NCBI GenBank assembly: GCA_009859145.1
Contig: VRVR01000005.1
Coordinates: 339,448-403,447 of the forward strand
DNA length: 64,000 nt
Source: Andalucia godoyi And28
Taxonomy: Eukaryota > Protista > Jakobida
Direction: 5' to 3'
The notes beneath the pieces are model-generated. The model did no database searches. It had not been told where the DNA came from and saw only the letters and a list, made by a program, of their open reading frames with translations. Shown here in pieces: positions 3,767 through 53,815 of this stretch. The translations under genes and the position numbers were made by a program. The first letter of the stretch is position 1, and each line of letters starts with the position of its first letter.

Positions 3767-6700
3767 TTACACATTCGAAATGGTCCATTTTTCAAACCTT
3801 TTGCTGGAATCGCGATCACAGAGTTTCTTAAACAAGTGGTTAAAGACACACTCGGGGCATGCAACAGCACTAGGACTTCTTTCAAGCTCCTGCATCACGG
3901 CTTGGACGGTGAGAGGACATGATTTCAACAGCCCGAAAAGCCCGCATCGATCCTTGAAAGTTGGCAAAATGATATCGAGAAAAGTGTGCTCGACAAACTG
4001 GTGTCCGCAGGAAAACACGCGATAGTTCACCCCTTTTTCGCGTAACGAGGAGAGGCCCACCCGGATGAACTCTCGCTTGCGCATCTTCTTCAATATGTTC
4101 TCAGAGATGTGACGAACAAGGATTTCGCTCGAGTTTGCAACCGCAGTTTGGGATTCGCGTCTTTCTTCAGCGTAATTCTCTAAAGCCAGCAACAGCAGAT
4201 CGACATGCGGAAACTGGACGTTCATTGCCGGGACACGAAGAAAGTGCAGCAGAGCCTTGGAGAAGATCGACATTCTTTCTTCAACATACGACACCAGGCG
4301 TTCCGACAACTGGGCAAACGGAAGAATCATGACAAACACGTCGTGCATCAGAAATGCTGCTTGACGATCGGTTACACCCATCTTGGAATCGTTCAAAGCA
4401 GCAAATAGGTCTTCAAGAATTGAGTACACCATCAGGCTGAACTCGGTGACAGTGCTGACCTCGGAAACAGACGAGTCTTGGAAGTAGGCACGACACCGAC
4501 TGATTCGAAGAGCGAGAGACTCTGACATGCGGCCGTTGACTTTAAGCAGCTCTTGCGCCAGCTGCCACTCCTGGTACCGAACCGAGTAGCGGAACACAAT
4601 GTCAAAATCAACTACTTTTTGATGCACGCGGATGTATCGGGAAAATGAGGAGAATAGCTCATTACGCTCTTCGTCCGCGGAAGGATCGGATCGGTACTTT
4701 GAATACAGGATGATGAGCGCCACAAAATAAAAATTGGACGAAGGAGCGAGAGATGGAAGAAGCTGCCGCAAATGCAGCATCGATAGGCAAGGAAGATCGT
4801 CTGCCAACAACGGACCAAAGCTCGACATCGTTTCCCGTGATGATGCAATGAGCAACGCTCGAAGATGGGGCTTTCGTGTCAGGTACAGCAAGACTGAGTT
4901 CGCGGGAGCTGCTAACATGGATCCGTAGTTGTGGAAAACGAGGAAGTTCGCAATCGCCTCGTCCTCCATCACGAAATACATATCGCGATTGATCAAAAGG
5001 TTAAAAACGGACTCCATCAAGGAGAGATTTGCCGAGTTCTTGCGATAATGCGCAGCATGGAACGCGAGGAGAGGGAAGCCAGAAGTCACCAGACTGAAAA
5101 TGGCGGATCCCGCATTGTAGAACATGTTATCCCGGACAAAAGCCTGCAGCCCGTCTACTTCTCGAAATTCCACAGCCCTGTGCAACAGCACTTGGAACAT
5201 GAGATCAGAGACTGAGCGTTGGTTGGAGAGCGTCAAGGAATCCAGTTTCTTAACACAGTCCTTCAGCAAGCCGAGAATGACGCTCGTTCTCGGCTCGCCG
5301 TCGGACAGATACGATGCGACAAGCTTGCTGACAATCTTATCAATAGGAGCACCAGAGAGTTTGTACAGGGCAACTGCAAGACGATACTCCTTTTGGGAAT
5401 ACGCGGCATCTGCCGACGTTTCGTACAGTTGCAGAACGTCCAAGTTGAAAGATTTGGCAAGCCGTTCTGCAACAGAAAAGGAAACCGTTCCGCCCTGAAG
5501 AAGCTGGCAAAACACTGACGACGGAGACTCCCGCAAGCTGATGGTGAACACAGACGATTGTGTGAAAATGTAGAACAGATCATTGAACACCGGATGCTGC
5601 ACAAATCCAAGGCAAATCTCCTTTGCCGGAAGCCGAAGTTCCTGAAGAATTGCATGCTCCATTCGTTTTCCAAGAGACCCAATACTCCTTGTTACTATTG
5701 GAGATTCGTCTTCATTTCTTTGGCCACCGGTTGCGGAAGGACTCGACGGACCGTTCATGTCCGAGTGCGAATGGACGAAAGAACTTGACGAACTGCTCAA
5801 GCTTGCGCATGAAATAGAAGAGAACAAGCAAATGCGTTCGCCAACACGAGAATCCAGCTGACTGCCCCGACAAAGTCCAAATATCAACTGCGATGTGGGC
5901 AAGACGAAGTCTGCATCGGAGGGAACATGAAACACAAACAACGGATATTCTTCATTGAGAGATCGCGCGTCGAAAATCTCGCATCGTCCCTGCAAACGAT
6001 CGTGCGCAGCTATCATTGGAGACTGAGAAACTAGGGAATTTGATGTAGAAGAGGATTTCTCTGCCGAACGGAACGAACGGATGGCTTCGACGGAGCAGTG
6101 ATTGGAGGCTGAAAACTTGCTCAAGAGCGAGGGTTTGAAGAGGTTCACTTTCTTCCCTTGAAGTGGATCAAATACTCGCAGGAACTTTGTATGCTTCGGT
6201 CCCGTAACGGTTAACACAGGAGGAACGCCGGGGTCTGGCATTTCTAAATACAGCTGGAAATACCTGCCATTCACGCAGCGTACGAGGACATATGATTCGA
6301 ACGCGCTTGGAAATGACAGAACTTCCATCTTCATGATGGAAGAACCAAAGGCATCCGCAGACAAGGAAAACACTTCCTTCTTCTTTGAGAGGTCAACAAT
6401 GCACAGACACCCTAGAGAGCTGCCAATAATCGCGTAGTGCTCTCCTGAAATCAAAGAAGTCCACCAAACAACTGCGGTGACATGATTCTGGGAAGAGACG
6501 TACGGCAGGACGCCTAGCAGAACACCGGAAAATGAATGCACAGAAGACGAAGCAGCGGAAGCTGCAACTGAGCCGCCATCCCCGCGCTGCGGTGGGACCG
6601 GCCTCTCCCCGCTCAGTTCTTCGATTGAAATCAACCCCCTTCTGTAGTTGAACAGGATCGAGTCTGGATTGGATCGGTCGATTGCCGAGGATTGGTCGAT

Positions 6701-7909
6701 GAAAGAAGAAAATGGAAACGTGCAGCTGAATGCGATAGGGACCACGTGCCCCTCAATAGAAAACGGGTCTGCAATCGTGTGCGATCCATCAAGTCCGACA
6801 TTCATTGTCATTTCATAGAGCGATGGTTTCAACTTGGGCTCCGACGCAGAGATAGACAGTGGACGGTCGCTGATCTTGAACAGCGCAGAATTCTTGTCGG
6901 CGGACACAACATTTCGACTCACGTTCGACGCATCACCTGTCTTGGGTGTGATGCCGAACGCCGCAATGGCTCTGGAAAGGGGAGAAAACGACACTGGATC
7001 GCCAAATGTGACAACTTGCTTGAGCGGGGTCAAATGCTTGTGCAGCGGAACAATGTACAGTTGTGCATTCAAGGTCGAGCACATCAAGTATTTGGCATCT
7101 GGAGACAAGTCCATTCCTCCGCGGATGTCAATCGACTTTTCTCTGAACCAGGACAATGTTCTTGCACATCCAGTCGACTTGTGGCGCTCATCGTCGATCG
7201 GTATCGGTGCATCACCGTTGTTCTCCTTCTCTGTCGTCTCTAAATCCGCGTCTTGCCAGTACAACAACAAGTCATTATTGGAATATCGAACGACAAGAAC
7301 CGTATTTTCTGCATCTCCACCGGCGATCACATCCTGAATAGCAATTTGTTTCGGCTGCTTCGTTCTTTTCGGGTCAGGAGACGCACCTCTTCGAAACGAG
7401 CGAATTGAGGAATTGTCGGTGTTCTCAGCCTCGTCATTATCGCCATCGGCGACATCGTATTCAGAATCCGATCCGTCCCGTTGTTTTGCGTCGGAAAGCA
7501 TGCTTTCGACTGTGTATCCTTCAAACTCGGACTTCAGAAGCGAAGCATCCACTTCCTCCTCCTCAAAATTCGGCTCCTGCATGACAAACGTCGGCAGTCG
7601 GTTGCCCTTTGTCGTTCGTTCTGACGTCGGCGGAGATGAGGACGATTCAAACAATCCGGCATCGGGAACAACAGGAGAGTTCAGAGATTCTGTGTCGAAT
7701 TGGTTACCAAAGGGACTCATCGTAGACAGTATGCCACCAACACCATTCTTACGTGGCGGCTTCTGCGCTTCTTTCGGCTCCGCAACTGGATTCGCAGGTT
7801 TTCCATTGGAAACGGGAGCCTTTGCTTTGCGCCTCTTTACGTTTCGCACAGTTATGAACCGCTTAAGCTGGCAAATGTCAAAGAAGACGAGATCAGGTCC
7901 TTCGTTCAT
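3767..7909 (-). CDS. Large beta-propeller / alpha-solenoid / C-terminal Cys-His protein, tentatively claret-like (vesicle-trafficking type)
   Basis: Open frame of ~1380 aa with a beta-strand-rich N-half (VVWWTS...AIIGSSLG), a helical middle (AERLAKSFNLDVLQLYE...AVALYKLS) and C-terminal FSCGH...ACPECV. The track start at 7951 is TTG; the first ATG is at 7909. The CDS is solid but the family call is from recollection. Confidence 0.75.
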   Translation of the reverse strand: MNEGPDLVFFDICQLKRFITVRNVKRRKAKAPVSNGKPANPVAEPKEAQKPPRKNGVGGILSTMSPFGNQFDTESLNSPVVPDAGLFESSSSPPTSERTTKGNRLPTFVMQEPNFEEEEVDASLLKSEFEGYTVESMLSDAKQRDGSDSEYDVADGDNDEAENTDNSSIRSFRRGASPDPKRTKQPKQIAIQDVIAGGDAENTVLVVRYSNNDLLLYWQDADLETTEKENNGDAPIPIDDERHKSTGCARTLSWFREKSIDIRGGMDLSPDAKYLMCSTLNAQLYIVPLHKHLTPLKQVVTFGDPVSFSPLSRAIAAFGITPKTGDASNVSRNVVSADKNSALFKISDRPLSISASEPKLKPSLYEMTMNVGLDGSHTIADPFSIEGHVVPIAFSCTFPFSSFIDQSSAIDRSNPDSILFNYRRGLISIEELSGERPVPPQRGDGGSVAASAASSSVHSFSGVLLGVLPYVSSQNHVTAVVWWTSLISGEHYAIIGSSLGCLCIVDLSKKKEVFSLSADAFGSSIMKMEVLSFPSAFESYVLVRCVNGRYFQLYLEMPDPGVPPVLTVTGPKHTKFLRVFDPLQGKKVNLFKPSLLSKFSASNHCSVEAIRSFRSAEKSSSTSNSLVSQSPMIAAHDRLQGRCEIFDARSLNEEYPLFVFHVPSDADFVLPTSQLIFGLCRGSQLDSRVGERICLFSSISCASLSSSSSSFVHSHSDMNGPSSPSATGGQRNEDESPIVTRSIGSLGKRMEHAILQELRLPAKEICLGFVQHPVFNDLFYIFTQSSVFTISLRESPSSVFCQLLQGGTVSFSVAERLAKSFNLDVLQLYETSADAAYSQKEYRLAVALYKLSGAPIDKIVSKLVASYLSDGEPRTSVILGLLKDCVKKLDSLTLSNQRSVSDLMFQVLLHRAVEFREVDGLQAFVRDNMFYNAGSAIFSLVTSGFPLLAFHAAHYRKNSANLSLMESVFNLLINRDMYFVMEDEAIANFLVFHNYGSMLAAPANSVLLYLTRKPHLRALLIASSRETMSSFGPLLADDLPCLSMLHLRQLLPSLAPSSNFYFVALIILYSKYRSDPSADEERNELFSSFSRYIRVHQKVVDFDIVFRYSVRYQEWQLAQELLKVNGRMSESLALRISRCRAYFQDSSVSEVSTVTEFSLMVYSILEDLFAALNDSKMGVTDRQAAFLMHDVFVMILPFAQLSERLVSYVEERMSIFSKALLHFLRVPAMNVQFPHVDLLLLALENYAEERRESQTAVANSSEILVRHISENILKKMRKREFIRVGLSSLREKGVNYRVFSCGHQFVEHTFLDIILPTFKDRCGLFGLLKSCPLTVQAVMQELERSPSAVACPECVFNHLFKKLCDRDSSKRFEKWTISNV

Positions 7910-8350
7910 GGATTCTGAAAGAGGACGTGCAGTCGAAAGCAAACAAGGCAATTTTCTGAAGAACCCGCGGGCAAAGAGGTTAAGACAAGGTCAAAAAGGC
8001 GAATTTGTGCAGAATGACTAACGAAAAGGGAAAAAAGGAACTCGGGAGCAAAAGCCCCGGTTTCGTTTCATGTTGAGTTGTTCCCGTGGCGTTTCGTACG
8101 ACAGAAACGAGCTTTCCGAAGCAAGTGCGGTTTCCCTGTGGATTTTTCCAATGGCGGCGGCTTCGTGTTGCTTTGCGGATTCTCTCGGGGAAAGATGTGC
8201 GTCAGGCGTCGCATGATGGATATGAGCAGCGTGAGTTTTTGAGGAGAACGGGCCACTGTCTTTCATTCCAGCGTCCAAAATGGGACTGGTGACTGTTGTG
8301 GGTCAACAAAGACTGAACACAAGGAAAAGAAGAGAAGTTGGAGGAGGAAG

Positions 8351-8386
8351 GGAAAGGGAAAGGGAAAGGGAAAGGGAAAGGGAAAG
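8351..8386. repeat. (GGAAAG)6 hexamer repeat
   Basis: Six perfect copies are visible. Confidence 0.9.
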
Positions 8387-8418
8387 AGGAGGAGAAAAAA
8401 CATGTGAAAGACTCGTTT

Positions 8419-11193
8419 TTACAAACCTGCTCGGGCTGAAAGAAGAGGTATTCCGCGTTGCACTGCGCGTCGCCGCCAGTAGAGGGCAAAGCCGGCGACC
8501 GCAGCAATGGTCGTAATGGCAAATGCAACGCTCAGGCCAACGATTGCGCCGGTTTTCGAGTCACCGCTGTCGCCACCGCCACCATTGGAAGACGGACTCT
8601 TTGGCAAAGTCGCTTGAGCAAGTGCGTATTCTCCGAACTGACTGACGCTCACAGACACTGAACAATTCGATCCGCTGTTGCTTGCTCCTCCGAACGCGCG
8701 AGGAACTAGCACGAACTCGCTTGAATCTGTGTACCGTGCAAACCCGTAGTATACGTACAAAGAGCAGCTGTCACGGGGATCCACGAGACGAGCATCCACA
8801 CCTGCAGATGGGGCAACTTCGAAAGAAATGAAGACGGGTGTTACAAACGACTGCTGCTCCGCGACGGTGCTTGGATTCTGGCCTGCAACTTGAGCAATGC
8901 GAAAGGAAACGGCTCCTGCGATGCTCGACAGTTGCAACCCTTCGAGATCGGCAGGGAGCTGCACACGAATGTCACTGGTGTGAAGCTCCACTACCGCGGC
9001 AGAGAATGTTGTGGAAGACGAGGCGTTTGTCAGAAAGCCAGGTGGAACGTCGATTCTCGGGCCGTTCTTCAGCTGCAGCACATTGCCGTGATCTAGATCA
9101 ATCGAAATGTTTTGCAGCGTGGTCCCGGAAAACAGCGTGGAAATGCGGACAGGGATGGACTGCGACAGCTCGATACGTGTGCCGTCTACCGGGGAAGAGC
9201 TGACAAACGACAAAATCAGATTGGTCGCACGAGGAAGCAATGCACGGCAGCATAGAGGAATGCTGAACGAGAATGCAATGCTGTGCCCAACGGTTGCCAT
9301 GGTGCCATTTCCTTGAAACGCGGCCGATCCTGGTACATCCGTTTCCAACACGAACGAGACAGTTGTGTGTGGGAACGACGCCGCAGCAGTTGGATTTTGA
9401 AACGCCACAGAAATCGCAAGAGATTCGGAAGGAGGAACAGGGCCAGCCAGATAAACATACGTCTGTCCTGCTGCCGGGGACAAGACAGTGACATCCGGGA
9501 ACGTGTATCCCGACGCACATGTGCTCGACAATGTGCCAAACTGCGACACCGTCACTACTCTGGCACTGTAGGCAGTTCCCGCAACCAATCCAGAAAAGAT
9601 AAAATTCATGATCTGCCCAGACTGGGTTTCCTGCGTTGCAATCGCTGGAGAGGACATCTGACATCCAGTGAGGCCCAGGTAAAGATATGCCGTTGTGCTG
9701 ACAATGGGGACACTGAATGGTGCGGGAGTCTGCGACGGAACACCGTATGCTAGCTGGATCTTAATCGAAGTCAAGCTGGTTCCTCCCATTGTCGAAATCG
9801 ATGGCTGAATCGGCGCTGATCCTGCGATTGCAATCGAGCCGGAAGCGAGGATGCGTTGGGATCCCACGAGGGAACCATGCACAAGGTGTGCAAATTCGGG
9901 ATACAGTTGTGCGAATGTGTTGTCAAACAAGGTTCGGGCATTCACGAAAATATTGCCGCGGAACGGCACCAAAGGAATCATCAAGTTAGTGAGCTTGATC
10001 GTGATCGATGTTCCAGGAACAAGGAACCAGCCGTCAGACACTTGAATGGCAGCAACAACCTTACCTGAATCATAAAATCGAGGAACTTGGAGCACCCGGA
10101 AGGACTGGCAAACACCTTTGGACCCATCCATGGCCATAAAATAACATCCAAACTGCCCAGCAGATGCGGCAATCGCAGCCTGCATCTCGTCTGGAAAGTC
10201 AAACAGCAGCTCCGTCGAATAACCAAGGCGACTTCCGATGTAGAAAGTCCCTGTCAGATCCATCATCCCTGGAGTGGTGTCGGAAGGCTGTACCTGGAAG
10301 GCACACGTCGAAGGAAACGATTCTGCTTGCGAACAATACTGCGTAACAGAGGAAAAGATGTGGTGTTGATTGTTGATGTCCCACGAGTTCGGAGCATACC
10401 ATTCTGCGCCCAAGTACGTTCCCGCAAGAGACAGCTGGCTCGCCTGTGCACTCAACATGACGCACGCAAGCGCGGCATTCTGCCATGCCTCGGGAGCCAC
10501 GTTTCGATCCATAAACGACCGAAACACTTTCATAATCGACAATGGAGAATTTTCAATCTCGTTCTCGAGTGCAGCATCGTCCTTGCCAGACGACTCCTCT
10601 TCCTCCGGAGAGACAAGCGTCGGAAGCTTGGAAAAAACGTTCGCAACAGATGCCACGAGATCTGCATACTTTGCTATCTTCAGAAAATACGAGTTTTCTG
10701 TTTCCGGTCCCTGGAATGCTTCGATGACCTGGCCGGCGCCTTCTATGACATGTTCTGCCACTTCTGCAAAATCTGTTTTTAGGAATGCCTCGGTCATGTC
10801 CGGCACGGAAAACAGCCACAGGGAAAACTCGGTCCACATCTTTTCAAATGCAATGCTTACTGCCTGATCAATGGTCCTGGCCGACGCAATCTGGGGTACG
10901 TCCAGAAACTCGGAGGCTTCTCGAAACATCATGCGATTGAGCTCGATTCGGTTGTTCAGGAGCTGCAGCGGCATGTTCTCTCTCAATTCACGCACTTGTT
11001 GCTCGGCGCGGAAGAACGCCACGCCCGATGCTGCAGCAAGACTAGCCGCAACGAGCACAAAGACGCACCAAAGGGCCGCAATCTTGCGCAAACCCTGCGA
11101 GTGCCAAAAGGGACTGTCCGCGTCCCACTCGCTGCTGATCCTCTTCTGGCAGATCACCATTCTTCTGTGCCTTTTTTCGTTCTCAGCAGCCAC
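8419..11193 (-). CDS. 924-aa cell-surface membrane protein: N-terminal TM, novel helical domain, beta-rich/FN3-like region, ZU5-like domain, C-terminal TM
   Basis: Hydrophobic segments ALWCVFVLVAASLAAASGVAFF and AIVGLSVAFAITTIAAVAGFALYW followed by RRR. FN3-like FSGLVAGTAYSARVVTVS; ZU5-like GPRIDVPPGFL...SQFGEYAL. Confidence 0.85.
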   Translation of the reverse strand: MAAENEKRHRRMVICQKRISSEWDADSPFWHSQGLRKIAALWCVFVLVAASLAAASGVAFFRAEQQVRELRENMPLQLLNNRIELNRMMFREASEFLDVPQIASARTIDQAVSIAFEKMWTEFSLWLFSVPDMTEAFLKTDFAEVAEHVIEGAGQVIEAFQGPETENSYFLKIAKYADLVASVANVFSKLPTLVSPEEEESSGKDDAALENEIENSPLSIMKVFRSFMDRNVAPEAWQNAALACVMLSAQASQLSLAGTYLGAEWYAPNSWDINNQHHIFSSVTQYCSQAESFPSTCAFQVQPSDTTPGMMDLTGTFYIGSRLGYSTELLFDFPDEMQAAIAASAGQFGCYFMAMDGSKGVCQSFRVLQVPRFYDSGKVVAAIQVSDGWFLVPGTSITIKLTNLMIPLVPFRGNIFVNARTLFDNTFAQLYPEFAHLVHGSLVGSQRILASGSIAIAGSAPIQPSISTMGGTSLTSIKIQLAYGVPSQTPAPFSVPIVSTTAYLYLGLTGCQMSSPAIATQETQSGQIMNFIFSGLVAGTAYSARVVTVSQFGTLSSTCASGYTFPDVTVLSPAAGQTYVYLAGPVPPSESLAISVAFQNPTAAASFPHTTVSFVLETDVPGSAAFQGNGTMATVGHSIAFSFSIPLCCRALLPRATNLILSFVSSSPVDGTRIELSQSIPVRISTLFSGTTLQNISIDLDHGNVLQLKNGPRIDVPPGFLTNASSSTTFSAAVVELHTSDIRVQLPADLEGLQLSSIAGAVSFRIAQVAGQNPSTVAEQQSFVTPVFISFEVAPSAGVDARLVDPRDSCSLYVYYGFARYTDSSEFVLVPRAFGGASNSGSNCSVSVSVSQFGEYALAQATLPKSPSSNGGGGDSGDSKTGAIVGLSVAFAITTIAAVAGFALYWRRRAVQRGIPLLSARAGL

Positions 11194-11676
11194 TTTGCAA
11201 AACCGTATCTCGCGGTTTGTGAAATGTTGAAAAAAAGACCGTGCCCGCAGACCACTTCTCTCCAGCAGACACGCTGCAGGACGAGGGACGAATCCTTCGA
11301 ACGTCGTGCCAAAAAAAAAACAACAACAAGGGCGGGCAAAGTCGACTGTGGCAGAGCCCGTGCAGGCAAAACGGGAACAGACTCGGCAGCAAAAACTTTT
11401 AAAAAATTCGTCGGACCCGCCAGAAATGGATAAATGCGATGTGGGGGCGGCACAAAGTTTTGCAGGCAGTCAACAACCAGAAGGTGCCTGTCCAGTTTCA
11501 ACGCCATGCTGCGGATCACAGATTATGTTCCCAGGCCCCAGTGCTGATTCCGAATCGCGTGCACTTTACGTTAGAGTCTGCGGCGAGCGTGCCCCATTCT
11601 TGTGTTTCTGTTTGGGAGTGTGTGAGTGTGTGTGTGTGTGTGTTTATTACGTAGTGGCTGGAAAACTTACTTCAGG

Positions 11677-12489
11677 ATGAACACGTCTAGCGGGGATGAT
11701 GGTGATGATACGGTCGAACTGATAGCGTCGACGGGATGCGCTTCCAAGCCCGGTGCGGTTCTTCTAACCAAGTCGGCTACCAGTTCTCGGGTGATATCGC
11801 CTTTACTGTTCTTTTCGATTCTGAGTGTCGTGTTGCTGATGATGCTCGTGGTGTGTGCGACGTTTACGGCACTCTTGTACTTCCGCGTGCGCCATTTGGA
11901 GATTGAAATGACTGGTACGGTGCAAAGGGTGCAGAGCGAAATGACTACTGTGTTGCGGACCGCTGGAGCCGAGTTGCAGGATGCTGTCATTCGACAGCTG
12001 CAGTTCTCATTGTACAACGTGTCGGTTCCGGATACACTGGCCAAGCTGCTGACCTCCAACTTTACCGAAATGGCTCTGTCAGTGGAGAATGCGGCGGGCT
12101 ATACGCAGGATATATACTATGGGGCCTCGGACTCGTACATGCACGAGGCCGGCATCAAGGCGTCGCTTGTGAAATCCATTGCGGCCGTGTTTCAGCAACT
12201 AACCCCGGTGCAACTGCTTCCTGCCATGCGGTCCATATTCGACCCCAGTGTCCTTGACAACAATGCGATTTCGATCCTTGCCAACTTGCAGCGATTTATC
12301 ATCGCCAACACGGACCTCAACAAGTGGATTTCAGTGTCCAATCTCTGCGCGCAGTTTGCAAATAACATGATGCAGCTAGATTGGTCGGGCTCGTACGACG
12401 ACGGAGGCAGCTGGGATCTCAATGATCAGAAGTATGTCCTGCAGTCTGTCTCAGATTGGTGCACTCGCTTCAGCGGAAACGCGTTGTAA
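11677..12489 (+). CDS. 270-aa single-pass (type II-like) membrane protein, paralog of the N-terminal domain of 8419-11193
   Basis: TM LLFFSILSVVLLMMLVVCATFTALLYF, then a helical region and four gapless blocks that align to the neighbour. ATG at 11677; the track start lies inside a GT repeat. Confidence 0.85.
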   Translation: MNTSSGDDGDDTVELIASTGCASKPGAVLLTKSATSSRVISPLLFFSILSVVLLMMLVVCATFTALLYFRVRHLEIEMTGTVQRVQSEMTTVLRTAGAELQDAVIRQLQFSLYNVSVPDTLAKLLTSNFTEMALSVENAAGYTQDIYYGASDSYMHEAGIKASLVKSIAAVFQQLTPVQLLPAMRSIFDPSVLDNNAISILANLQRFIIANTDLNKWISVSNLCAQFANNMMQLDWSGSYDDGGSWDLNDQKYVLQSVSDWCTRFSGNAL

Positions 12490-30429: not shown

Positions 30430-33111
30430 CTAAACGGAAGTTGAAGAGGGATTTGGCTTGGGTGGAGGCGGATGCGCAGCATTGGAATGCGTCAGGTTTT
30501 CAAACACCTCCTCGAGAGACGTCTTGGAGATACCCCAGTCACTGATGCCGAGGCTGGAAGTCACCGCATCAAATTTGCGGAATACATCGGCGAGACGGAT
30601 GGCTCCGTAGGGAATGGAGAAGTGCGATGTCCCGTTCAGGGAATCAACCAACCTTGCGCCTGCAAAGGAGCTGAGGACGAACTGGCGCAGACGCGGTTCG
30701 TTAACCGAAGCATTCGAGACAGTGGTGGCCAATCGGTACCCTTCGCCATACGTTGTTTTCAAGTGTTCCGCATGACCAATTGCAACAAGCTTGCCGTGGT
30801 TCATGATGGCGATACGATCTGAAAGTGCATCGGCCTCTTCCATGGAATGGGTCGTTAAAACCAGGGCTCGACCGGGTTTGGCTGCCTGAATCACGTCCCA
30901 CAATTCTCGACGCGAGTGCGGATCCAGCCCGGTAGTCGGTTCATCCAGAAACACAATCTTTGGATCTCCAATGAGCGACATTGCAACCGACAAGCGACGC
31001 CGCATTCCTCCCGAGTAACCACTGGTGTGGACATTCGCAAAGTCGGAAAGATTGACCTTTTTGAGCAAATCGTCCACTCCTTCAAACAGTTTCTTGCCCT
31101 TCAGTCCCTTGAGACGTCCGTAAAAGATCAGGTGTTCTCGTCCCGTCTGGTTCGGCCACAAAATGTCAAACTGCGGGCAGACTCCCATGAACGAATAGAT
31201 GGTTTCCATCTCTGTTGCTACATCGTATCCACCGAGGTAGGCTTCTCCAGAGGTGATCGTATGGAGACCGCAAAGCATGGAAATCAAGGTAGTCTTTCCA
31301 GCTCCGTTGTGTCCAAGCATGCCTAGCAAGCTGTTCTCAGGGATCGCAAGCGAAACATTATCAACCGCAGTAATGTCGCGGACGTCCGTCACAAAGCGCT
31401 TCACGATGTTGTGCACAACAATTCCACGGAATTCTTCGTTGACATTGGAAGTCGAGGAGCGTGTCCCTCCACTGCCAGTGCTAGAAACCGACTTTCTTGG
31501 GGACTGCATCTCAACCTCCCCAGCACCACCCGCGGCCGTTCGATTGGAATCAGCAGCCGCAGAAGTGCCTACTACCCCGGCAGCCTTCATCTGCGAAATG
31601 ATGCGATCCACTCTGCGACGCTCCTGAAGAACATCTGCCGATGCAGCTTCCTTTTCACCCTTTGTGACTGCAGCTGCCGACTCCTTTTCAAGTTTCAGCG
31701 CACGGGCACGGGAGCCAATGTTGAGACGGATTGCAATGGACGGCCAGAATTCAATCAAGAAAAACAATACGTACATGACGACTGCCTCTCCGATGAGCAT
31801 GCCATACACATCATACAACAAGTTTCCGTCCGAGTTTGCGTTCGAAAACGTCAAACCAGGCAGCGGATTCGAGGAAGCCAGAGAGAGGTACAGCAGCCCA
31901 CGGTTCACTGCAAACGTCGGGATGATGGACGGAAGTGTGAGGGACGCCGTCGAGGTTCCTGGCTCATCCATCAACTGCGAGTTCGTCACTTCGGCAGCGA
32001 TGCCGGCAATAATAATGTAGAAATACAAGGTGATGGTGGACGATTGCGTCGTCTTGAACATGGTAGTCGCAAGCAGGGACATTGCAATAACCGTGAAGCC
32101 CCATATGATGAACAGGATGATGTACAGCCCGATTTCATTCATGGTGAAGAACCGCAGCTGGAAAACATTTCCGAACACGACTAACACAATCATCGAGCAG
32201 AGGTAGAGAGCCCAATCAAACGCATACTGCACCCACCAATAAACCGACTCACGAAGACCCATCATGCGCATCATGTTTTTCAGCTTGTACTGCTTCTCAA
32301 AAACGACTGCATCTACAAACACGGGCATCAGAAGATGCAAAATCCACGTAATGTAGATCGTCTGCATGAACACCGCAAAGTCAAAATACGTCTCAAAGGA
32401 CTTTGACGGCAATCGTTGATACTGGACTACATATTGTGCAGTTCGTGAAAGTCGGGCTGCAGAGACCTGCACAAACGACCGCATAGCGGAGAACAGCGGT
32501 CCCGGAAGGTCCTGGAACTCACTGCCGTCTTCTCTGTCGTCTTCCTGCAGCGACGCATTGTAGTAGATGGTCATGCGCAGACTCGACGAAGCGTTCAGCC
32601 CTTCCAAAATGAAGGCAGAAGGAACATTGGTTCCTTCTCCGTACTGCGAATACAGGAACTGGTCAATCGCGGTCTTGTCTGCAAATTGCTGAAACGGAGG
32701 GTAGTTTGGAGCCTGCTGCCCACCAAATCCAAGAAAGACGTTGTTTGAAGTGTACAGGTCCAAAAACGACGAAAGGGACGTCGCGTTGGATCCAGACACG
32801 AAGGTATACGGAAACGTTTGTCCGCTCCCACCCTTTCTCGGCTGCATGTTAATCACACCTGGCAACGGCGAAGGAGAAGGGCGGTCAGCAGTTGAAGTTT
32901 GTGAAAGAGATTTTGACAGAAGAGAAACCAGTGCCAGAATCAGCAACAGGAACATTGGGAAACAGACTTGGCAGCAGTTGGTCTTTTTCTGACGACGCTG
33001 CAAAATCCCTTGCTTTCGAAACAGCGCATTAAACTGGGAAGCTGTTGAGGTCCTTGCACCTTTCAGTCTAGTCTGTTCTTGCTGCATAGTTTGAGGAGAA
33101 ACTTTGTTCAT
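30430..33111 (-). CDS. ABC transporter subfamily A, half-size (TMD-NBD)
   Basis: EKQYKLKNMMRMMGL, GHNGAGKTT, YSGGMRRRLSVA, FLDEPTTGLDP, TTHSMEEADAL, KTSLEEVF. Confidence 0.95.
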   Translation of the reverse strand: MNKVSPQTMQQEQTRLKGARTSTASQFNALFRKQGILQRRQKKTNCCQVCFPMFLLLILALVSLLSKSLSQTSTADRPSPSPLPGVINMQPRKGGSGQTFPYTFVSGSNATSLSSFLDLYTSNNVFLGFGGQQAPNYPPFQQFADKTAIDQFLYSQYGEGTNVPSAFILEGLNASSSLRMTIYYNASLQEDDREDGSEFQDLPGPLFSAMRSFVQVSAARLSRTAQYVVQYQRLPSKSFETYFDFAVFMQTIYITWILHLLMPVFVDAVVFEKQYKLKNMMRMMGLRESVYWWVQYAFDWALYLCSMIVLVVFGNVFQLRFFTMNEIGLYIILFIIWGFTVIAMSLLATTMFKTTQSSTITLYFYIIIAGIAAEVTNSQLMDEPGTSTASLTLPSIIPTFAVNRGLLYLSLASSNPLPGLTFSNANSDGNLLYDVYGMLIGEAVVMYVLFFLIEFWPSIAIRLNIGSRARALKLEKESAAAVTKGEKEAASADVLQERRRVDRIISQMKAAGVVGTSAAADSNRTAAGGAGEVEMQSPRKSVSSTGSGGTRSSTSNVNEEFRGIVVHNIVKRFVTDVRDITAVDNVSLAIPENSLLGMLGHNGAGKTTLISMLCGLHTITSGEAYLGGYDVATEMETIYSFMGVCPQFDILWPNQTGREHLIFYGRLKGLKGKKLFEGVDDLLKKVNLSDFANVHTSGYSGGMRRRLSVAMSLIGDPKIVFLDEPTTGLDPHSRRELWDVIQAAKPGRALVLTTHSMEEADALSDRIAIMNHGKLVAIGHAEHLKTTYGEGYRLATTVSNASVNEPRLRQFVLSSFAGARLVDSLNGTSHFSIPYGAIRLADVFRKFDAVTSSLGISDWGISKTSLEEVFENLTHSNAAHPPPPKPNPSSTSV

Positions 33112-37525: not shown

Positions 37526-37965
37526 CAATTTTTTCTCTTTTCCATTAATAATGTACTACTACCCTCCAACCCAAACGTTGCCACATTTTTGTCACTCCCA
37601 CAACTGTCTTAGTCAACCTTCTGTTTTCTTCAAAGACACTCTCCATTCTGCAATAGCACCAATCCGATCAGCAATATTGCCCTGGGAGGTTGGCAGATCT
37701 GCGCAACAACAGCCAAAATTTTTCAGCTCCTCGCCTTTGGAGCTTGCGCTTACTACCGACCGTAGTGGAACATGCCCCCCTCTACCTCGTAGATCATCAC
37801 AGAGGGAGCGGGCTGGACGAGAGTCCAAAGTTCAGGTTCCTTTCTCCGCTTCCATTCCCGTAACCAAGACGCGTTCGTAAAAAGAAGCCACTTGTGTTCT
37901 TCTCATTCCGTATGCAGTCGCTTTATCTATATCAAATGTTGGAAAAAGGTGTCTTCATGTGCATG

Positions 37966-38038
37966 TCGACTATGGTCCAGGTGGTTAAGACGTCGCCCTT
38001 TCAAGGCGAACACCCGGGTTCGAGTCCCGGTAGTCGAG
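37966..38038 (+). tRNA. tRNA-Glu(UUC)
   Basis: Acceptor stem TCGACTA/TAGTCGA, anticodon arm TCGCC-CTTTCAA-GGCGA, T arm CCGGG-TTCGAGT-CCCGG. Confidence 0.97.
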
Positions 38039-38044
38039 GATTTC

Positions 38045-38052
38045 TTTTTTTT
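38045..38052 (+). terminator. Pol III terminator (T8) of tRNA-Glu
   Basis: Eight T residues starting 7 nt after the discriminator base. Confidence 0.8.
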
Positions 38053-38179
38053 CCCCCTCCTGCTTTTGTTTTCTGTTGGAACACATGGAGGGGTGAGATT
38101 GTCGTCATTGCGAGTTGCGACTCTGCCTTGTCGTGTGTGGCAACTTCAGTTCCGCACAGCGTCTGAGCATTACTGCAAG

Positions 38180-41100
38180 ATGGAGACGCTGAACGGTCTG
38201 TTTCTGCCAATAGACCAGTGGATCTCTCTGCTGCTGAACGATGATCAGAGCCAAACTCTTCTTTCATGGTCCTATGGAAGTGGTGTTTCAAAGCAGGTGT
38301 TGATGCAACGGAGGTCTCTCCTTGTCCGAGCGATTCTCGGTTTCCTTGCTTCGTTTCAAAAGTCAGAACACTGCGACGCAGGACGAATGATGATGATCGA
38401 TCCGTCCACTCCAGTTGCAGTCGTTCGATGCCCTGGCCGCGTCAACCTCCGGGGAATGCACATTGATTCACATGGAGGAGCATGCAACGCGATTGCAACA
38501 GATAGGGAAACAGTGCTTGTTTTCACTGTGGCTTCCTCTGCGAAACTCGACGCCGTGCATGTTCCTGCTGCGTTGAGACCGACCACCACCGTGATTCTTT
38601 CCAACGGTCGAGACGCCGATGTTTCGTGGTTTCATTGGTTATCTGCGCTTGGATCTTCACTTTCTGCAGACTTGGTAAAGCAGGTGGTGCAAAGCCCGTC
38701 GCACAGTGTGCCTCCTCACCATGTGTTGTGTGTGGACAAACAGGCATCCGGATCAGGATTACCCGATCAGGCATCCACGTTTCCTGCGTGGTGCAAATAC
38801 GTATTTGCTTCAATCAAAGTATTAGAAGACGCGGGATTCTTGTTTCCAGCGTGCGCGGACCAGCATTCTCCAATGTTAGTGGGACATTTGGAGTCTGATC
38901 TGCCAAGCGGCTGTGGGATTTCATCGTCGCATGCATTGCTGATGGTGTTGCTGCAGTCGCTGGTCGTAACATGCCGATGCGCGTTTGCCAACTCGGACAC
39001 AACACTGTTTGAAAACACGAGAAACAGGCAGGGATTGGATCGGATTGAGATTCTGGAGCTTGCAAGAGCGGCCGAGTTCAAGGCAGGAAAAGTCACCGGG
39101 CTTGGAGACCAGGGCGCAATGGAATTCTCCAAGGCCTCACAAGTTGTGCATGCCAACTTCTATCAGGACGATCTGGTCAGCATTGATCCAAGGCATGTGC
39201 CGCTTCCTACCGATGAAGTTTCCATCGTTGTTGTGAATTCGCTTACGGAACGGGATCTAAGTGGGGATGCAAAGGTTCGATATGCAATACCCAGGTTTGC
39301 GTACTCGATCGGTCTTGCGCTGGTGAAGCAAACCGCGCGGCGCATGTGGGGGGCTGCAGAACTGGACGGTGAGACATCGGGGCATGGTGGACACAAGGAA
39401 CAGAAGGACGACTGGGCATGGCTGGATCGCCTGTCGAGGATCAGCAGTGCCGATGGTCGAATGGCACGATATGGGGGATGGACTGGAGTTTATCAGCTGT
39501 TGCGCGCTCTTCCAGCAAGAACAACTGTGGACGAACTTCAGTCGCTGCATCCCGAGTTGCATGCGGATATCTCACGTGCGGCTTCTTCGTATCTGAACAA
39601 TATTGGATCCAACATGCTTGATGAAGTCGGTGGAATTGATGTTCGGGGCCCTTTGCTGTATGGTGTTTCGGAATGTGCTCGATCGGAAAGGTTTTTTGAG
39701 CTTCTTCACAGACATGCAGAGGCCTCTGCATCCGCATCATCCGATCATTCCAGCCACGTCACCAATTACTTGTTGGATGCATGCAGACTCATGTCCATTG
39801 GCCATCTCGGCGATTCTATCAAGAGCCCTGCGGTCAACGACGAAATGTTGGAGGGGCTCATTCAGCGGACATTGCTCATGGAAAAGAGCGATCGCTCTTG
39901 TGCGCTGGAACTGCAGCCTGGCAGTTTTGGAGCTTCCACGACGGCCCTGGATGCCATTCAAGAGCTTTTGATATCCAAAGGAGCTCTTGGAGCGTCGCTC
40001 ACGGGTGCTGGGTTGGGCGGCGTGGTGGTGGCCCTAGTTCCAAACGACCAAGCTGAGCGGGTTGTGGAGGATAGCGCTTCTTTTGTCCTTCGTTGCTTCG
40101 GCGCGTGCCATCCCGAAGCGAATTCCGACGACCGCCACGTTGTTGCATTCCGCGTCTTTCCGGTGAACGGCGCCGGATTTGTGCATCCACACATGGCTTC
40201 GCTCGCGATCGGGGCAGAAGCTGCACTTCGAGCAAGTTCGCTTCGTCTGCTTCCTGCTCGCCAGTCTCTTTACCCGCTGCGCTATTCCACGACGGAAGCA
40301 CTCGAAGCGATTCGTGCATCTCTGCAGACGTCGCCTTTCCCAAGTGCTCTGTTCTCCGCAGATCATAAGCGCTTTCATGTTGTGGTCACTGGCGGAGCCG
40401 GGTTTATTGGCGCTCACGTTTCGCTGTCTTTCGCAGCAGCAGGACATGATGTCACGGTCCTTGATGATTGCAACGATTACTATGATCCATTGTTAAAATT
40501 TGCAAACTTGTGGATGCTCACCCGGCATCCGAGCGTCCGTTTTCGGTGGTGCGACATTCGTTCCGTTGCTTCACTCGAATCTGCTTTGGCAAGCATCCGA
40601 TCGAATCTGCAAAATGTGGATCTTGTGGTTCATCTTGCTGCTCGTGCTGGTGTTCGGCCGTCTGTTCAGTTTCCGGAACTCTACAAATCGACAAACGTCA
40701 CTGGAACGCAGAATGTTTTTGACGCGTGTGTCGCGCGTGGATGTCGTGCATTTGTTTATGCATCGTCGTCATCGGTGTATGGAGCGAAGCAAGCAGGGCC
40801 GTTTCGCGAGGACATGACTCTTTCGACTCCCGAGTCTCCTTACGCAGCGACAAAGGCAGAGTGCGAAGTGATCTCGAATGCAAGAGCGTATGAGTGCGAA
40901 CAAGGTGCGTTCATTGGGCTTCGCTTCTTTACTGTGGATGGCCCTATGTTGTGCGGCGTCCCAGGACGCCCGGACATGGCAATTGCATCTTTCATTCGAT
41001 CGTTTGAGACCGGCGGTCGAGAAGCTGTCACAATGTACGGAGACGGAGAGTACCAGAGAGACTTTTCATTTGTGCAGGATATTGTTCAGGGAATCCTGCG

Positions 41101-41623
41101 TTCTGCGGATCGTGCCTATGTGAATCGTGACCGCAATTTCCACGAAGTCTTTAATCTCGGCGAGCAAGACACCACAACGGTGAAGGCGGTCATCTTGATG
41201 ATTGCACAAGAGATGGGGCTGCTCTCATCTTGCAATGTCGGGGCCCTCAAGGACCTGCCGATCTCCGTGCAGAACGAATTGCTAGCGGATTTGATACAGC
41301 GAGGATTGGTAAAGCGGGTACCGCCCCCTGCTGGTGATGTCCCGCTGACCCATGCATGTATCAACAAGGCAAAGACTGTTCTTGGTTATGCTCCTGCCGT
41401 GAAGATCCAAGAAAATGTTCAGCGAACGGTGATGTCACGTCAGAACGGCGTTTGGTTTTCTGTTGAAACCCGAAAGTCTTTGGAGGCAGTTTTCGACAAG
41501 ATGCATGGGAAGCCGCTTGACGCCGATCGAGCACTGTTGGCGAAGTCTTGTCTTCGACGCATGTGTGTGCTGGAACCGGAAGTTGGTTTGTGGCAAGCGG
41601 CAGTGTCCCTGCTCAGCCAATAA
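38180..41623 (+). CDS. Fusion protein: GHMP sugar kinase (galactokinase/galacturonokinase-like) plus NAD-dependent UDP-glucuronate 4-epimerase-like SDR
   Basis: Kinase motifs: PGRVNLRGMHID, LPSGCGISSS, GLGDQ, GASLTGAGLGG. SDR motifs: TGGAGFIG, HLAARAGVRPS, YASSSSVYG, YAATK, GLRFFTV..GRPDMA. One uninterrupted frame; ATG at 38180 (the track start runs through the tRNA). Confidence 0.9.
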   Translation: METLNGLFLPIDQWISLLLNDDQSQTLLSWSYGSGVSKQVLMQRRSLLVRAILGFLASFQKSEHCDAGRMMMIDPSTPVAVVRCPGRVNLRGMHIDSHGGACNAIATDRETVLVFTVASSAKLDAVHVPAALRPTTTVILSNGRDADVSWFHWLSALGSSLSADLVKQVVQSPSHSVPPHHVLCVDKQASGSGLPDQASTFPAWCKYVFASIKVLEDAGFLFPACADQHSPMLVGHLESDLPSGCGISSSHALLMVLLQSLVVTCRCAFANSDTTLFENTRNRQGLDRIEILELARAAEFKAGKVTGLGDQGAMEFSKASQVVHANFYQDDLVSIDPRHVPLPTDEVSIVVVNSLTERDLSGDAKVRYAIPRFAYSIGLALVKQTARRMWGAAELDGETSGHGGHKEQKDDWAWLDRLSRISSADGRMARYGGWTGVYQLLRALPARTTVDELQSLHPELHADISRAASSYLNNIGSNMLDEVGGIDVRGPLLYGVSECARSERFFELLHRHAEASASASSDHSSHVTNYLLDACRLMSIGHLGDSIKSPAVNDEMLEGLIQRTLLMEKSDRSCALELQPGSFGASTTALDAIQELLISKGALGASLTGAGLGGVVVALVPNDQAERVVEDSASFVLRCFGACHPEANSDDRHVVAFRVFPVNGAGFVHPHMASLAIGAEAALRASSLRLLPARQSLYPLRYSTTEALEAIRASLQTSPFPSALFSADHKRFHVVVTGGAGFIGAHVSLSFAAAGHDVTVLDDCNDYYDPLLKFANLWMLTRHPSVRFRWCDIRSVASLESALASIRSNLQNVDLVVHLAARAGVRPSVQFPELYKSTNVTGTQNVFDACVARGCRAFVYASSSSVYGAKQAGPFREDMTLSTPESPYAATKAECEVISNARAYECEQGAFIGLRFFTVDGPMLCGVPGRPDMAIASFIRSFETGGREAVTMYGDGEYQRDFSFVQDIVQGILRSADRAYVNRDRNFHEVFNLGEQDTTTVKAVILMIAQEMGLLSSCNVGALKDLPISVQNELLADLIQRGLVKRVPPPAGDVPLTHACINKAKTVLGYAPAVKIQENVQRTVMSRQNGVWFSVETRKSLEAVFDKMHGKPLDADRALLAKSCLRRMCVLEPEVGLWQAAVSLLSQ

Positions 41624-53439: not shown

Positions 53440-53445
53440 AAAAAA
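53440..53445 (-). terminator. Pol III terminator (T6) of the 5S rRNA gene
   Basis: A6 on the plus strand at the 3' end of the 5S gene. Confidence 0.75.
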
Positions 53446-53560
53446 GTACAGCACTGGGAATTCCCGAGTGGTCACCCACCTCAGTACTACTCCAGCCTGA
53501 GAGCACTTGACTTCGCAAATCGGACGGGATGCGGTATTTTCACTCTAGTATGGCCGTACC
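53443..53560 (-). rRNA. 5S rRNA (single copy in the window)
   Basis: Reverse complement reads GGTACGGCCATAC...CATCCCGTCCGATTTGCGAAGTCAAG...AGTAGTACTGAGGTGGGTGACCACTCGGGAATTCCCAGTGCTGTAC-TTTT, with eukaryotic 5S landmarks and a paired 5'/3' helix I. Confidence 0.97.
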
Positions 53561-53815
53561 TGAGAGGCACGGTTGCTAGTCAGTTGAAGTACACCAACAC
53601 AAAAAACAAAAAAAAGACGCAGTTGTGGCGATGAGCAGTGCAACCCCCCCGAACGCTGGGAACGTCGAACGCGGCCGGGGGTGCGAGACGCCCACCTGGT
53701 CAATCTATGATAAGCCACACGTGGAGAGGAAAAACCGAGGAATAGTGGGCAAGGGAGATCGATAATATACAGTATGGAGCAAAATGGGAGGAATACAGTT
53801 ACAAGCGCGCACATG

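Follow-up and report, generated by a model that had tools for sequence, protein, structure and literature searches.

A head-to-head pair of paralogous membrane protein genes in Andalucia godoyi shares a domain that defines an undescribed protist family

Results

A divergent gene pair encodes two homologous proteins

The stretch analysed here (the window) is 64,000 nucleotides of contig VRVR01000005.1 of Andalucia godoyi And28 (assembly GCA_009859145.1, positions 339,448 to 403,447). A. godoyi is a free-living jakobid flagellate. Positions are those of the window unless another contig is named. Between 8419 and 12489 the window contains two genes transcribed away from each other, and their products, a large protein of 913 amino acids (aa) and a small protein of 270 aa, are homologous over a domain that matches none of the described families and solved structures searched. 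An earlier note, made from the sequence alone, had drawn attention to this pair, and both open reading frames (ORFs) lie where it had placed them.

The large gene occupies 8419..11160 on the minus strand, counted from its first ATG (913 aa and the stop codon; deposited protein P0001). Its mechanical ORF extends over 8419-11193, from a GTG at 11193, the first ATG being codon 12 (11160). The small gene occupies 11677..12489 on the plus strand (270 aa and the stop codon; deposited protein P0002). The divergent arrangement described in the earlier note is retained, but not its figures of 924 aa and 483 bp: with codon 12 as the earliest ATG of the large ORF, and 913 aa as the length of the deposited product, the spacer measures 516 bp from ATG to ATG (11161..11676). 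This spacer, presumed to be a shared regulatory region, contains a (GT)13 microsatellite at 11618-11643, 34 bp 5' of the ATG of the small gene. At the other end of the pair an (AAGGGA)n repeat (8348-8397) lies directly 3' of the stop codon of the large gene.

The large protein, all of whose parts are encoded on the minus strand, begins with a 26-aa tail (11083-11160) and an N-terminal hydrophobic anchor (aa 27-50, IAALWCVFVLVAASLAAASGVAFF; 11011..11082). The helical domain that it shares with the small protein covers aa ~100-280 (10321..10863), as delimited by the homology of the pair and by the family hidden Markov model (HMM; E=1e-48), and includes two conserved Cys, C233 (10462-10464) and C276 (10333-10335). 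From the domain to a second anchor runs a region of ~590 aa rich in Ser, Ala, Val and Thr (8557..10320). This second anchor is a C-terminal transmembrane segment (aa 871-895; 8476..8550), and an 18-aa basic tail follows it (8422-8475). In the small protein, on the plus strand, a 42-aa tail precedes the N-terminal anchor (aa 43-69; 11803..11883); the shared domain, delimited by an AlphaFold2 model and the family HMM, spans aa ~105-266 (11989..12474), and its conserved Cys are C224 (12346-12348) and C262 (12460-12462). The small protein does stop just past the second shared Cys, as first described: 8 residues follow C262.

The two whole proteins align by BLASTP with E=5e-17 (26% identity over 247 aa), and the region common to both comprises ~165 residues C-terminal to the N-terminal anchor. 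With the membrane segments removed, their Smith-Waterman score is 171, against 32+/-5 in 1000 global shuffles (z=27) and 34+/-6 in local shuffles (z=21). The similarity is thus significant against shuffled controls (z=21-27), a comparison that the earlier note had proposed. Three of its four gapless shared blocks are recovered with the same counts (14/33, 10/23 and 8/18), while the 44-aa block gives 9/44 in our register instead of 10/44. No further copy of the domain or of the stalk, i.e. the ~590-aa region of the large protein, was found elsewhere in the 64-kb window.

Two features of the small gene were observed in passing. Its third-position GC content (0.66) is the highest of the 24 long ORFs of the window that were checked (0.49-0.66), which may reflect a codon bias due to high expression. 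The tail ahead of its anchor, presumed to be cytosolic, contains at aa 10-15 (DTVELI, 11704-11721) an acidic cluster followed by a dileucine motif of the [DE]xxxL[LI] type; the motif may serve endocytic or lysosomal sorting, or be there by chance.

The shared domain belongs to a family of protist proteins

Word-index homology searches with each window protein as query returned the query itself only. HMMER, run exhaustively on 1.84 billion representatives with a profile of the two window proteins as query, found 24 further proteins (E from 1e-17 to 8e-4), all of them matching the shared region only. The family profile then added 4 more members by word-index search, bringing the family to ~30 sequence clusters, from other protists. 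On these profile matches, the shared domain is not private to the window pair but defines a protist family. The relatives, environmental or SRA proteins, come from JGI/IMG, ENA, Logan and unnamed NCBI records, and none is meaningfully named.

The typical member has 200-310 aa and consists of a variable N-terminal tail, a single hydrophobic segment, a helical stretch and the domain. Since typical members are thus made of anchor and domain, the 270-aa window protein represents the normal form of the family and not a fragment. The motifs follow one another in a fixed order: S-[IV]-P-D, D-[FW], YASLVxS[IV]A, DDxG[VI]LN..YL, W..A..C, DWSGxY, SW[DN]xN and YC. The two Cys are near-invariant, i.e. conserved in at least 90% of the family. 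Both window proteins carry the anchor and the ordered motifs by which membership was assessed. Their scores against the family HMM (E~1e-48 for both) are those of proteins that are themselves part of that model. Two members independent of it are also recovered: the large protein of locus L002 (E=5e-14) and L007a (E=4e-14). The second copy at locus L001 reaches E=8e-63, though it is mostly P0017, which is itself in the model.

Within the domain no Pfam match was found, either for the window proteins (beyond noise) or among 26 family members, and an NCBIfam search gave noise only. The only Pfam matches among these 26 members are in P0005, in which TSP1 repeats (E=1e-27) and a C-terminal hydrophobic segment follow the domain; P0015 and P0024 have Cys-rich tails at the same place. 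Scans of metagenome contigs with a jakobid-type alignment and with an alignment of the closer subgroup gave no confirmed loci, and literature searches on surface proteins of A. godoyi and on the SRA run SRR15116022, in which relatives of the pair occur (see below), returned nothing relevant.

A mobile-element or viral origin of the pair was considered and rejected: Foldseek gave no match in BFVD, the gene context is that of ordinary eukaryotic genes, and the composition is uniform.

The domain is predicted to form a helical bundle without match in the structures searched

The small protein was modelled by AlphaFold2 on a 30-sequence alignment, with a mean predicted local distance difference test (pLDDT) of 78.8 and values above 90 over most of the domain. 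In this model a long helix (37-114) takes in the membrane segment. It is followed by helices 117-125, 129-147, 153-172, 197-212 and 214-232, a hairpin (237-247) and a closing helix (249-265). C224 lies in helix 214-232 and C262 in helix 249-265, so that each of the last two long helices has one of the conserved Cys. The large protein, modelled in its 924-aa version on a two-sequence alignment, gave a pLDDT of 34, which makes that model unusable.

With the domain model as query, the best Foldseek match in the PDB has E=0.33, with template modelling scores of at most 0.2 (292 matches at E<=10, 50 of them listed); in BFVD the best has E=0.15. Neither is significant. The family profile matches, among PDB sequences, designed helical repeat proteins only, over a 49-residue helical stretch (best E=1.9e-4). 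The domain is therefore without match among the described families and solved structures searched (Pfam, NCBIfam, PDB profiles, and Foldseek against PDB and BFVD), as the earlier note had supposed, and was undescribed before.

The large protein probably contains one FN3-like module

A Pfam search of the ~590-residue region of the large protein gave nothing at the cutoff. Compared with the PDB, a stalk profile built from three large proteins matches over ~100 residues FN3 domains of Dscam (E=9.5e-6), fibronectin (4.5e-3) and IL-12Rb1 (0.015), and also those of NCAM and neogenin. These matches centre on GLVAGTAYSARVVTVSQFG (aa 524-546; 9523-9591, minus strand), with the pattern GTAYSxxVV..S.FG. 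The Pfam fn3 model itself scores 12.2-12.8 bits on the large protein, below its cutoff of 25 bits, and over strands F-G only. On the strength of the PDB profile matches, and despite the Pfam score, one FN3-like module is likely at aa ~470-560 (9481..9753, minus strand); the remainder of the region matches nothing in the sequence comparisons made. For what had been described as a beta-rich stalk of ~600 aa, the model of pLDDT 34 is a poor basis, and the positive evidence is this one FN3-like module.

The divergent pair is conserved at two other loci

The small protein has its closest relative in P0003 (31% identity, E=4e-23). This 735-aa protein is encoded on a 7.7-kb contig of SRA run SRR15116022 (locus L002; 58% GC), head-to-head with a gene for a 909-aa protein. 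The latter has an N-terminal anchor, the family domain, a collinear FN3-like motif and a C-terminal anchor, and its alignment with the window large protein is collinear over the whole protein (E=9e-5). The C-terminus of P0003 is hydrophobic, preceded by small residues, and resembles a glycosylphosphatidylinositol (GPI) signal; the extension that follows its domain matches neither the stalk of the large proteins nor the PDB. A second contig of the same run (locus L003) carries another head-to-head pair, at 6805-12214. On the plus strand, the product shares 30% identity with P0003 over 677 aa; the minus-strand gene matches the L002 909-aa protein with E=3e-39. Both L003 genes contain frameshifts, and there is an in-frame TGA at 10610-10612; these copies could be pseudogenes or reflect assembly errors. 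The head-to-head arrangement is thus kept in relatives, one of the points that the earlier note had proposed to check.

A neighbour-joining tree was built that includes the six domains of the window, L002 and L003 pairs. These six form one clade (90% bootstrap). Within it the domains of the two large proteins of SRR15116022 pair up (76%), as do those of their two partners (72%), and the two window copies group together in only 0.5% of the bootstraps. The genes flanking the three pairs are unrelated, none being common to them. From these groupings, and because the same divergent pair is found at two loci with different flanks, the duplication is older than the split between A. godoyi and the SRR15116022 organism, the pair having moved as a unit and, it seems, also been duplicated in that form. 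The claim of an old duplication is upheld by these data.

Other loci show different arrangements. L001 (40% GC, intron-bearing genes) contains two tandem members, 43% identical. L007 (1-20939; 63% GC) also contains two, in tandem and 33% identical, one of them (9068-9856) devoid of both conserved Cys; a squalene-synthase fragment from the same locus gave no match in the PDB. All 18 of the 18 called genes of L007 are on one strand and intron-less, a layout that resembles the polycistronic units of euglenozoans. L004-L006, near-identical contigs from three samples, have one copy each and no second within 10 kb.

Proposed co-regulation and association of the two products

The two window genes are ancient paralogs. 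We propose that they encode two membrane glycoproteins, each with an uncleaved N-terminal signal anchor and the rest of the chain outside. The shared ectodomain of ~165 residues would be a compact bundle, made up of five helices, then a beta-hairpin and a final helix, with probably one disulfide; the long helix that carries it would run on into the membrane anchor. In the 270-aa protein we see the basic form of the family, and in the 913-aa protein this basic form extended by ~590 residues, with a probable FN3-like module and a second anchor. The ~0.5-kb spacer would co-regulate both genes, and the products would act together at the cell surface, associating through the shared domain and the stalk helices, the long subunit supplying FN3-type binding modules for adhesion or recognition. 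We give this reading, i.e. co-regulated surface glycoproteins associating via the shared domain, the long one with FN3-type modules, a probability of about 0.4. Co-regulation and joint function are suggested by the fact that the pair predates the split and has not been separated although the genes around it differ. The homology, the family membership, the fold model and the conserved arrangement are results; the topology, the disulfide, co-expression, physical contact and a part in adhesion or recognition are predictions.

Several observations weigh against this proposal. Genes often stand head-to-head in this genome (8 of the 23 gene junctions of the window), so that what is unusual about the pair is that its genes are paralogs and its arrangement conserved, not its orientation. 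The stalks alone of the window and L002/L003 large proteins give 10.5 bits, against 8.7 for the best shuffle; since this is barely above shuffles, and the collinear alignment is weak, orthology of these large proteins is taken as probable, and not as established. No motif or k-mer common to the three divergent spacers (window, L002 and L003) stands out above shuffles. The mid-membrane Asn or Gln found in 17 of the 23 anchor-bearing members is replaced in the window pair by Ser or small residues. With a long partner in the relative and a short one in the window, any complex must have changed in composition; the idea of a long receptor with a short partner, put forward in the earlier note, holds for A. 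godoyi only, the partner in the relative having 735 aa. Finally, P0011 and P0017 fall in the same subclade of the tree, and the tandem pairs of L001 and L007 look lineage-specific, so local duplication alone could explain adjacency. Adjacent members are frequent in the family, but these two cases speak for expansion by local duplication no less than for proteins that work in pairs.

This last point leads to an alternative that we regard as possible, if rather unlikely: the two proteins would have independent functions in a family that grows by local duplication, their adjacency would be maintained by interleaved regulatory elements in the short spacer, and there would be no complex. Besides the apparently lineage-specific tandem paralogs of L001 and L007, it is favoured by the single copies of L004-L006, by the frequency of divergent junctions and by the different architecture of the partner among organisms. 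But under this alternative one would have to account for the persistence of the divergent pair at ~31% protein identity, though the flanks differ, and for the pair of the relative, both genes of which were apparently duplicated together.

Predicted membrane topology and the conserved Cys

In the proposed co-regulated surface pair the domain would be extracellular or lumenal, held by an uncleaved signal anchor with a cytosolic N-terminus. Four observations argue for a domain facing outside. Relatives carry extracellular modules after the domain (the TSP1 repeats and Cys-rich tails mentioned above). The two Cys are conserved as a pair, which L007a has lost as a whole. In three proteins NxS/T sequons occupy two equivalent positions, N114 and N128 in the small protein and their counterparts in P0003 and in the product of the L003 plus-strand gene. 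Lastly, the stalk of the large protein has a probable FN3-like module. The near-invariance of the two Cys and their joint loss in one paralog also fit a disulfide, as the earlier note had suggested; one bond between them is most likely.

A cleaved signal peptide would change this picture: the small protein would be soluble and secreted, while the large one would act as a receptor or adhesin of type I, its helical domain forming a membrane-distal head, the two making up a ligand/receptor or a secreted-modulator pair. In its favour, the segment of the large protein ends in small residues (AASLAAASG) that offer a possible cleavage site, the GPI-like C-terminus of P0003 points to a class of proteins that normally have cleaved signals, and many proteins with a head domain have a type I layout. 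We nevertheless consider it improbable, in view of the tails of 26-60 aa ahead of the segment, the length of the segments (20-27 residues), the Asn or Gln conserved in mid-segment in 17 of 23 relatives and the AlphaFold2 model, in which the segment is continuous with the stalk helix at a pLDDT of ~90. The mid-segment Asn or Gln in particular argues for a segment that is retained and engaged in helix-helix contacts.

That the small gene is a truncated, decaying and non-functional remnant of a longer, P0003-like partner is very improbable: it is indeed the sole one of six jakobid-type copies without a C-terminal extension, and the TGA and frameshifts of L003 indicate that decay occurs in the subfamily, but its ORF is intact and lacks none of the family motifs and neither Cys, proteins of 200-310 aa made of anchor and domain are the normal family form, its third-position GC of 0.66 tops the long ORFs of the window, and downstream of the gene there is no trace of an extension.

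Gene context in the window

The window has a uniform composition (GC ~50%) and standard stop codons. Its ORFs are long and mostly uninterrupted, on alternating strands, as in a compact eukaryotic genome. The A. godoyi genome is ~20 Mb in size, mostly intron-less and tightly packed (Gray et al. 2020, PMC7050145). The gene content includes ESCO, GET3, a P4-ATPase, ATG13, SF-assemblin, ABCA and ABCG transporters, HemD and a TPR-thioredoxin. The ABCA transporter ORF (893 aa; 30430-33111, minus strand) is identical, over the prefix shown, to the A. godoyi model _02085.mRNA.1 (Table S1, PMC7050145), which confirms the organism; among the databases searched, EukProt alone contains the proteins of the window. 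Intergenic gaps are of 36-452 bp between convergent genes and of 430-2144 bp between divergent ones, and the spacer of the pair is among the shortest divergent ones.

The large gene adjoins a 1394-aa ORF (3767-7951, minus strand) without Pfam match, which ends with a CxxC...CxxC-like motif. Farther along, a single ORF (37892-41623, plus strand) encodes galactokinase (GHMP) domains and, at the C-terminus, an NAD-dependent epimerase domain, an apparent GalK-epimerase fusion. A tRNA-Glu(UUC) gene (37966-38038) lies within the mechanical 5' end of this ORF, whose true start is therefore further downstream. A solitary 5S rRNA gene (53443-53561, minus strand; 100.8 bits) is located between HemD and a 1113-aa gene without Pfam match, with no linkage to other rRNA genes within the window.

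Discussion

Jakobids are central to ideas on early eukaryotes, and almost nothing is known of their cell surface. Through the pair described here, a domain family known so far as unnamed environmental fragments is anchored in a genome and has a confident model. As a divergent paralog pair kept across a deep divergence, it is also a case for questions of co-regulation and of heteromer formation. If the complex exists, it would represent a new type of protist surface receptor, with FN3- or TSP1-type modules carried by a new head domain; if it does not, what remains is a well-defined orphan family, of modest importance. A broader view, in which the pair would be the first members anchored in a genome of a new extracellular fold of poorly sampled protists and adjacent paralogs would form obligate two-subunit surface complexes, e.g. 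a recognition or adhesion machine with which a deep-branching eukaryote captures prey, attaches to a substrate or makes cell-cell (mating) contact, is speculative and in our opinion improbable.

Among known systems, the large protein first calls to mind the FN3 receptors and adhesins (Dscam, fibronectin, NCAM, IL-12R beta-1), with which it has in common the transmembrane segment near the C-terminus, the short basic tail that follows and, probably, one or more FN3-like modules. It differs from them in that it shows a single short candidate module, scoring below the Pfam cutoff, and in that its helical head and N-terminal anchor have no counterpart there.

The gamete-fusion proteins IZUMO1, SPACA6 and TMEM95 are composed of a disulfide-bonded helix bundle, a beta-hairpin, one or more beta-sandwich domains and a transmembrane segment. 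The parts of the large protein would come in the same order, but the analogy does not go beyond the layout: the sequences do not match, and none of the 50 listed Foldseek PDB matches of the domain model bears the name IZUMO1 or SPACA6. In tetherin (BST-2), a protein of type II, both ends of the helical ectodomain are anchored in the membrane, a double-anchored topology that is possible for the large protein and for P0003 (N-terminal anchor and GPI-like C-terminus). Tetherin is however a simple coiled coil, whereas the proteins considered here would have a globular helix bundle and hundreds more residues, and no similarity of sequence or structure links them.

Closer in phylogeny, VSG, HpHbR and GARP of trypanosomes, which belong to the same supergroup (Discoba), also have disulfide-stabilised helical extracellular domains. 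These are type I or GPI-anchored three-helix bundles, and none was recovered by Foldseek or by sequence profiles. Adhesins with TSP1 repeats are linked to the family by P0005, which ties it to extracellular adhesion modules, although the window proteins themselves have no such repeats. Across these comparisons the domain family is undescribed, the type of modular surface protein in which it occurs is otherwise familiar, and the conserved paralog pair is well supported.

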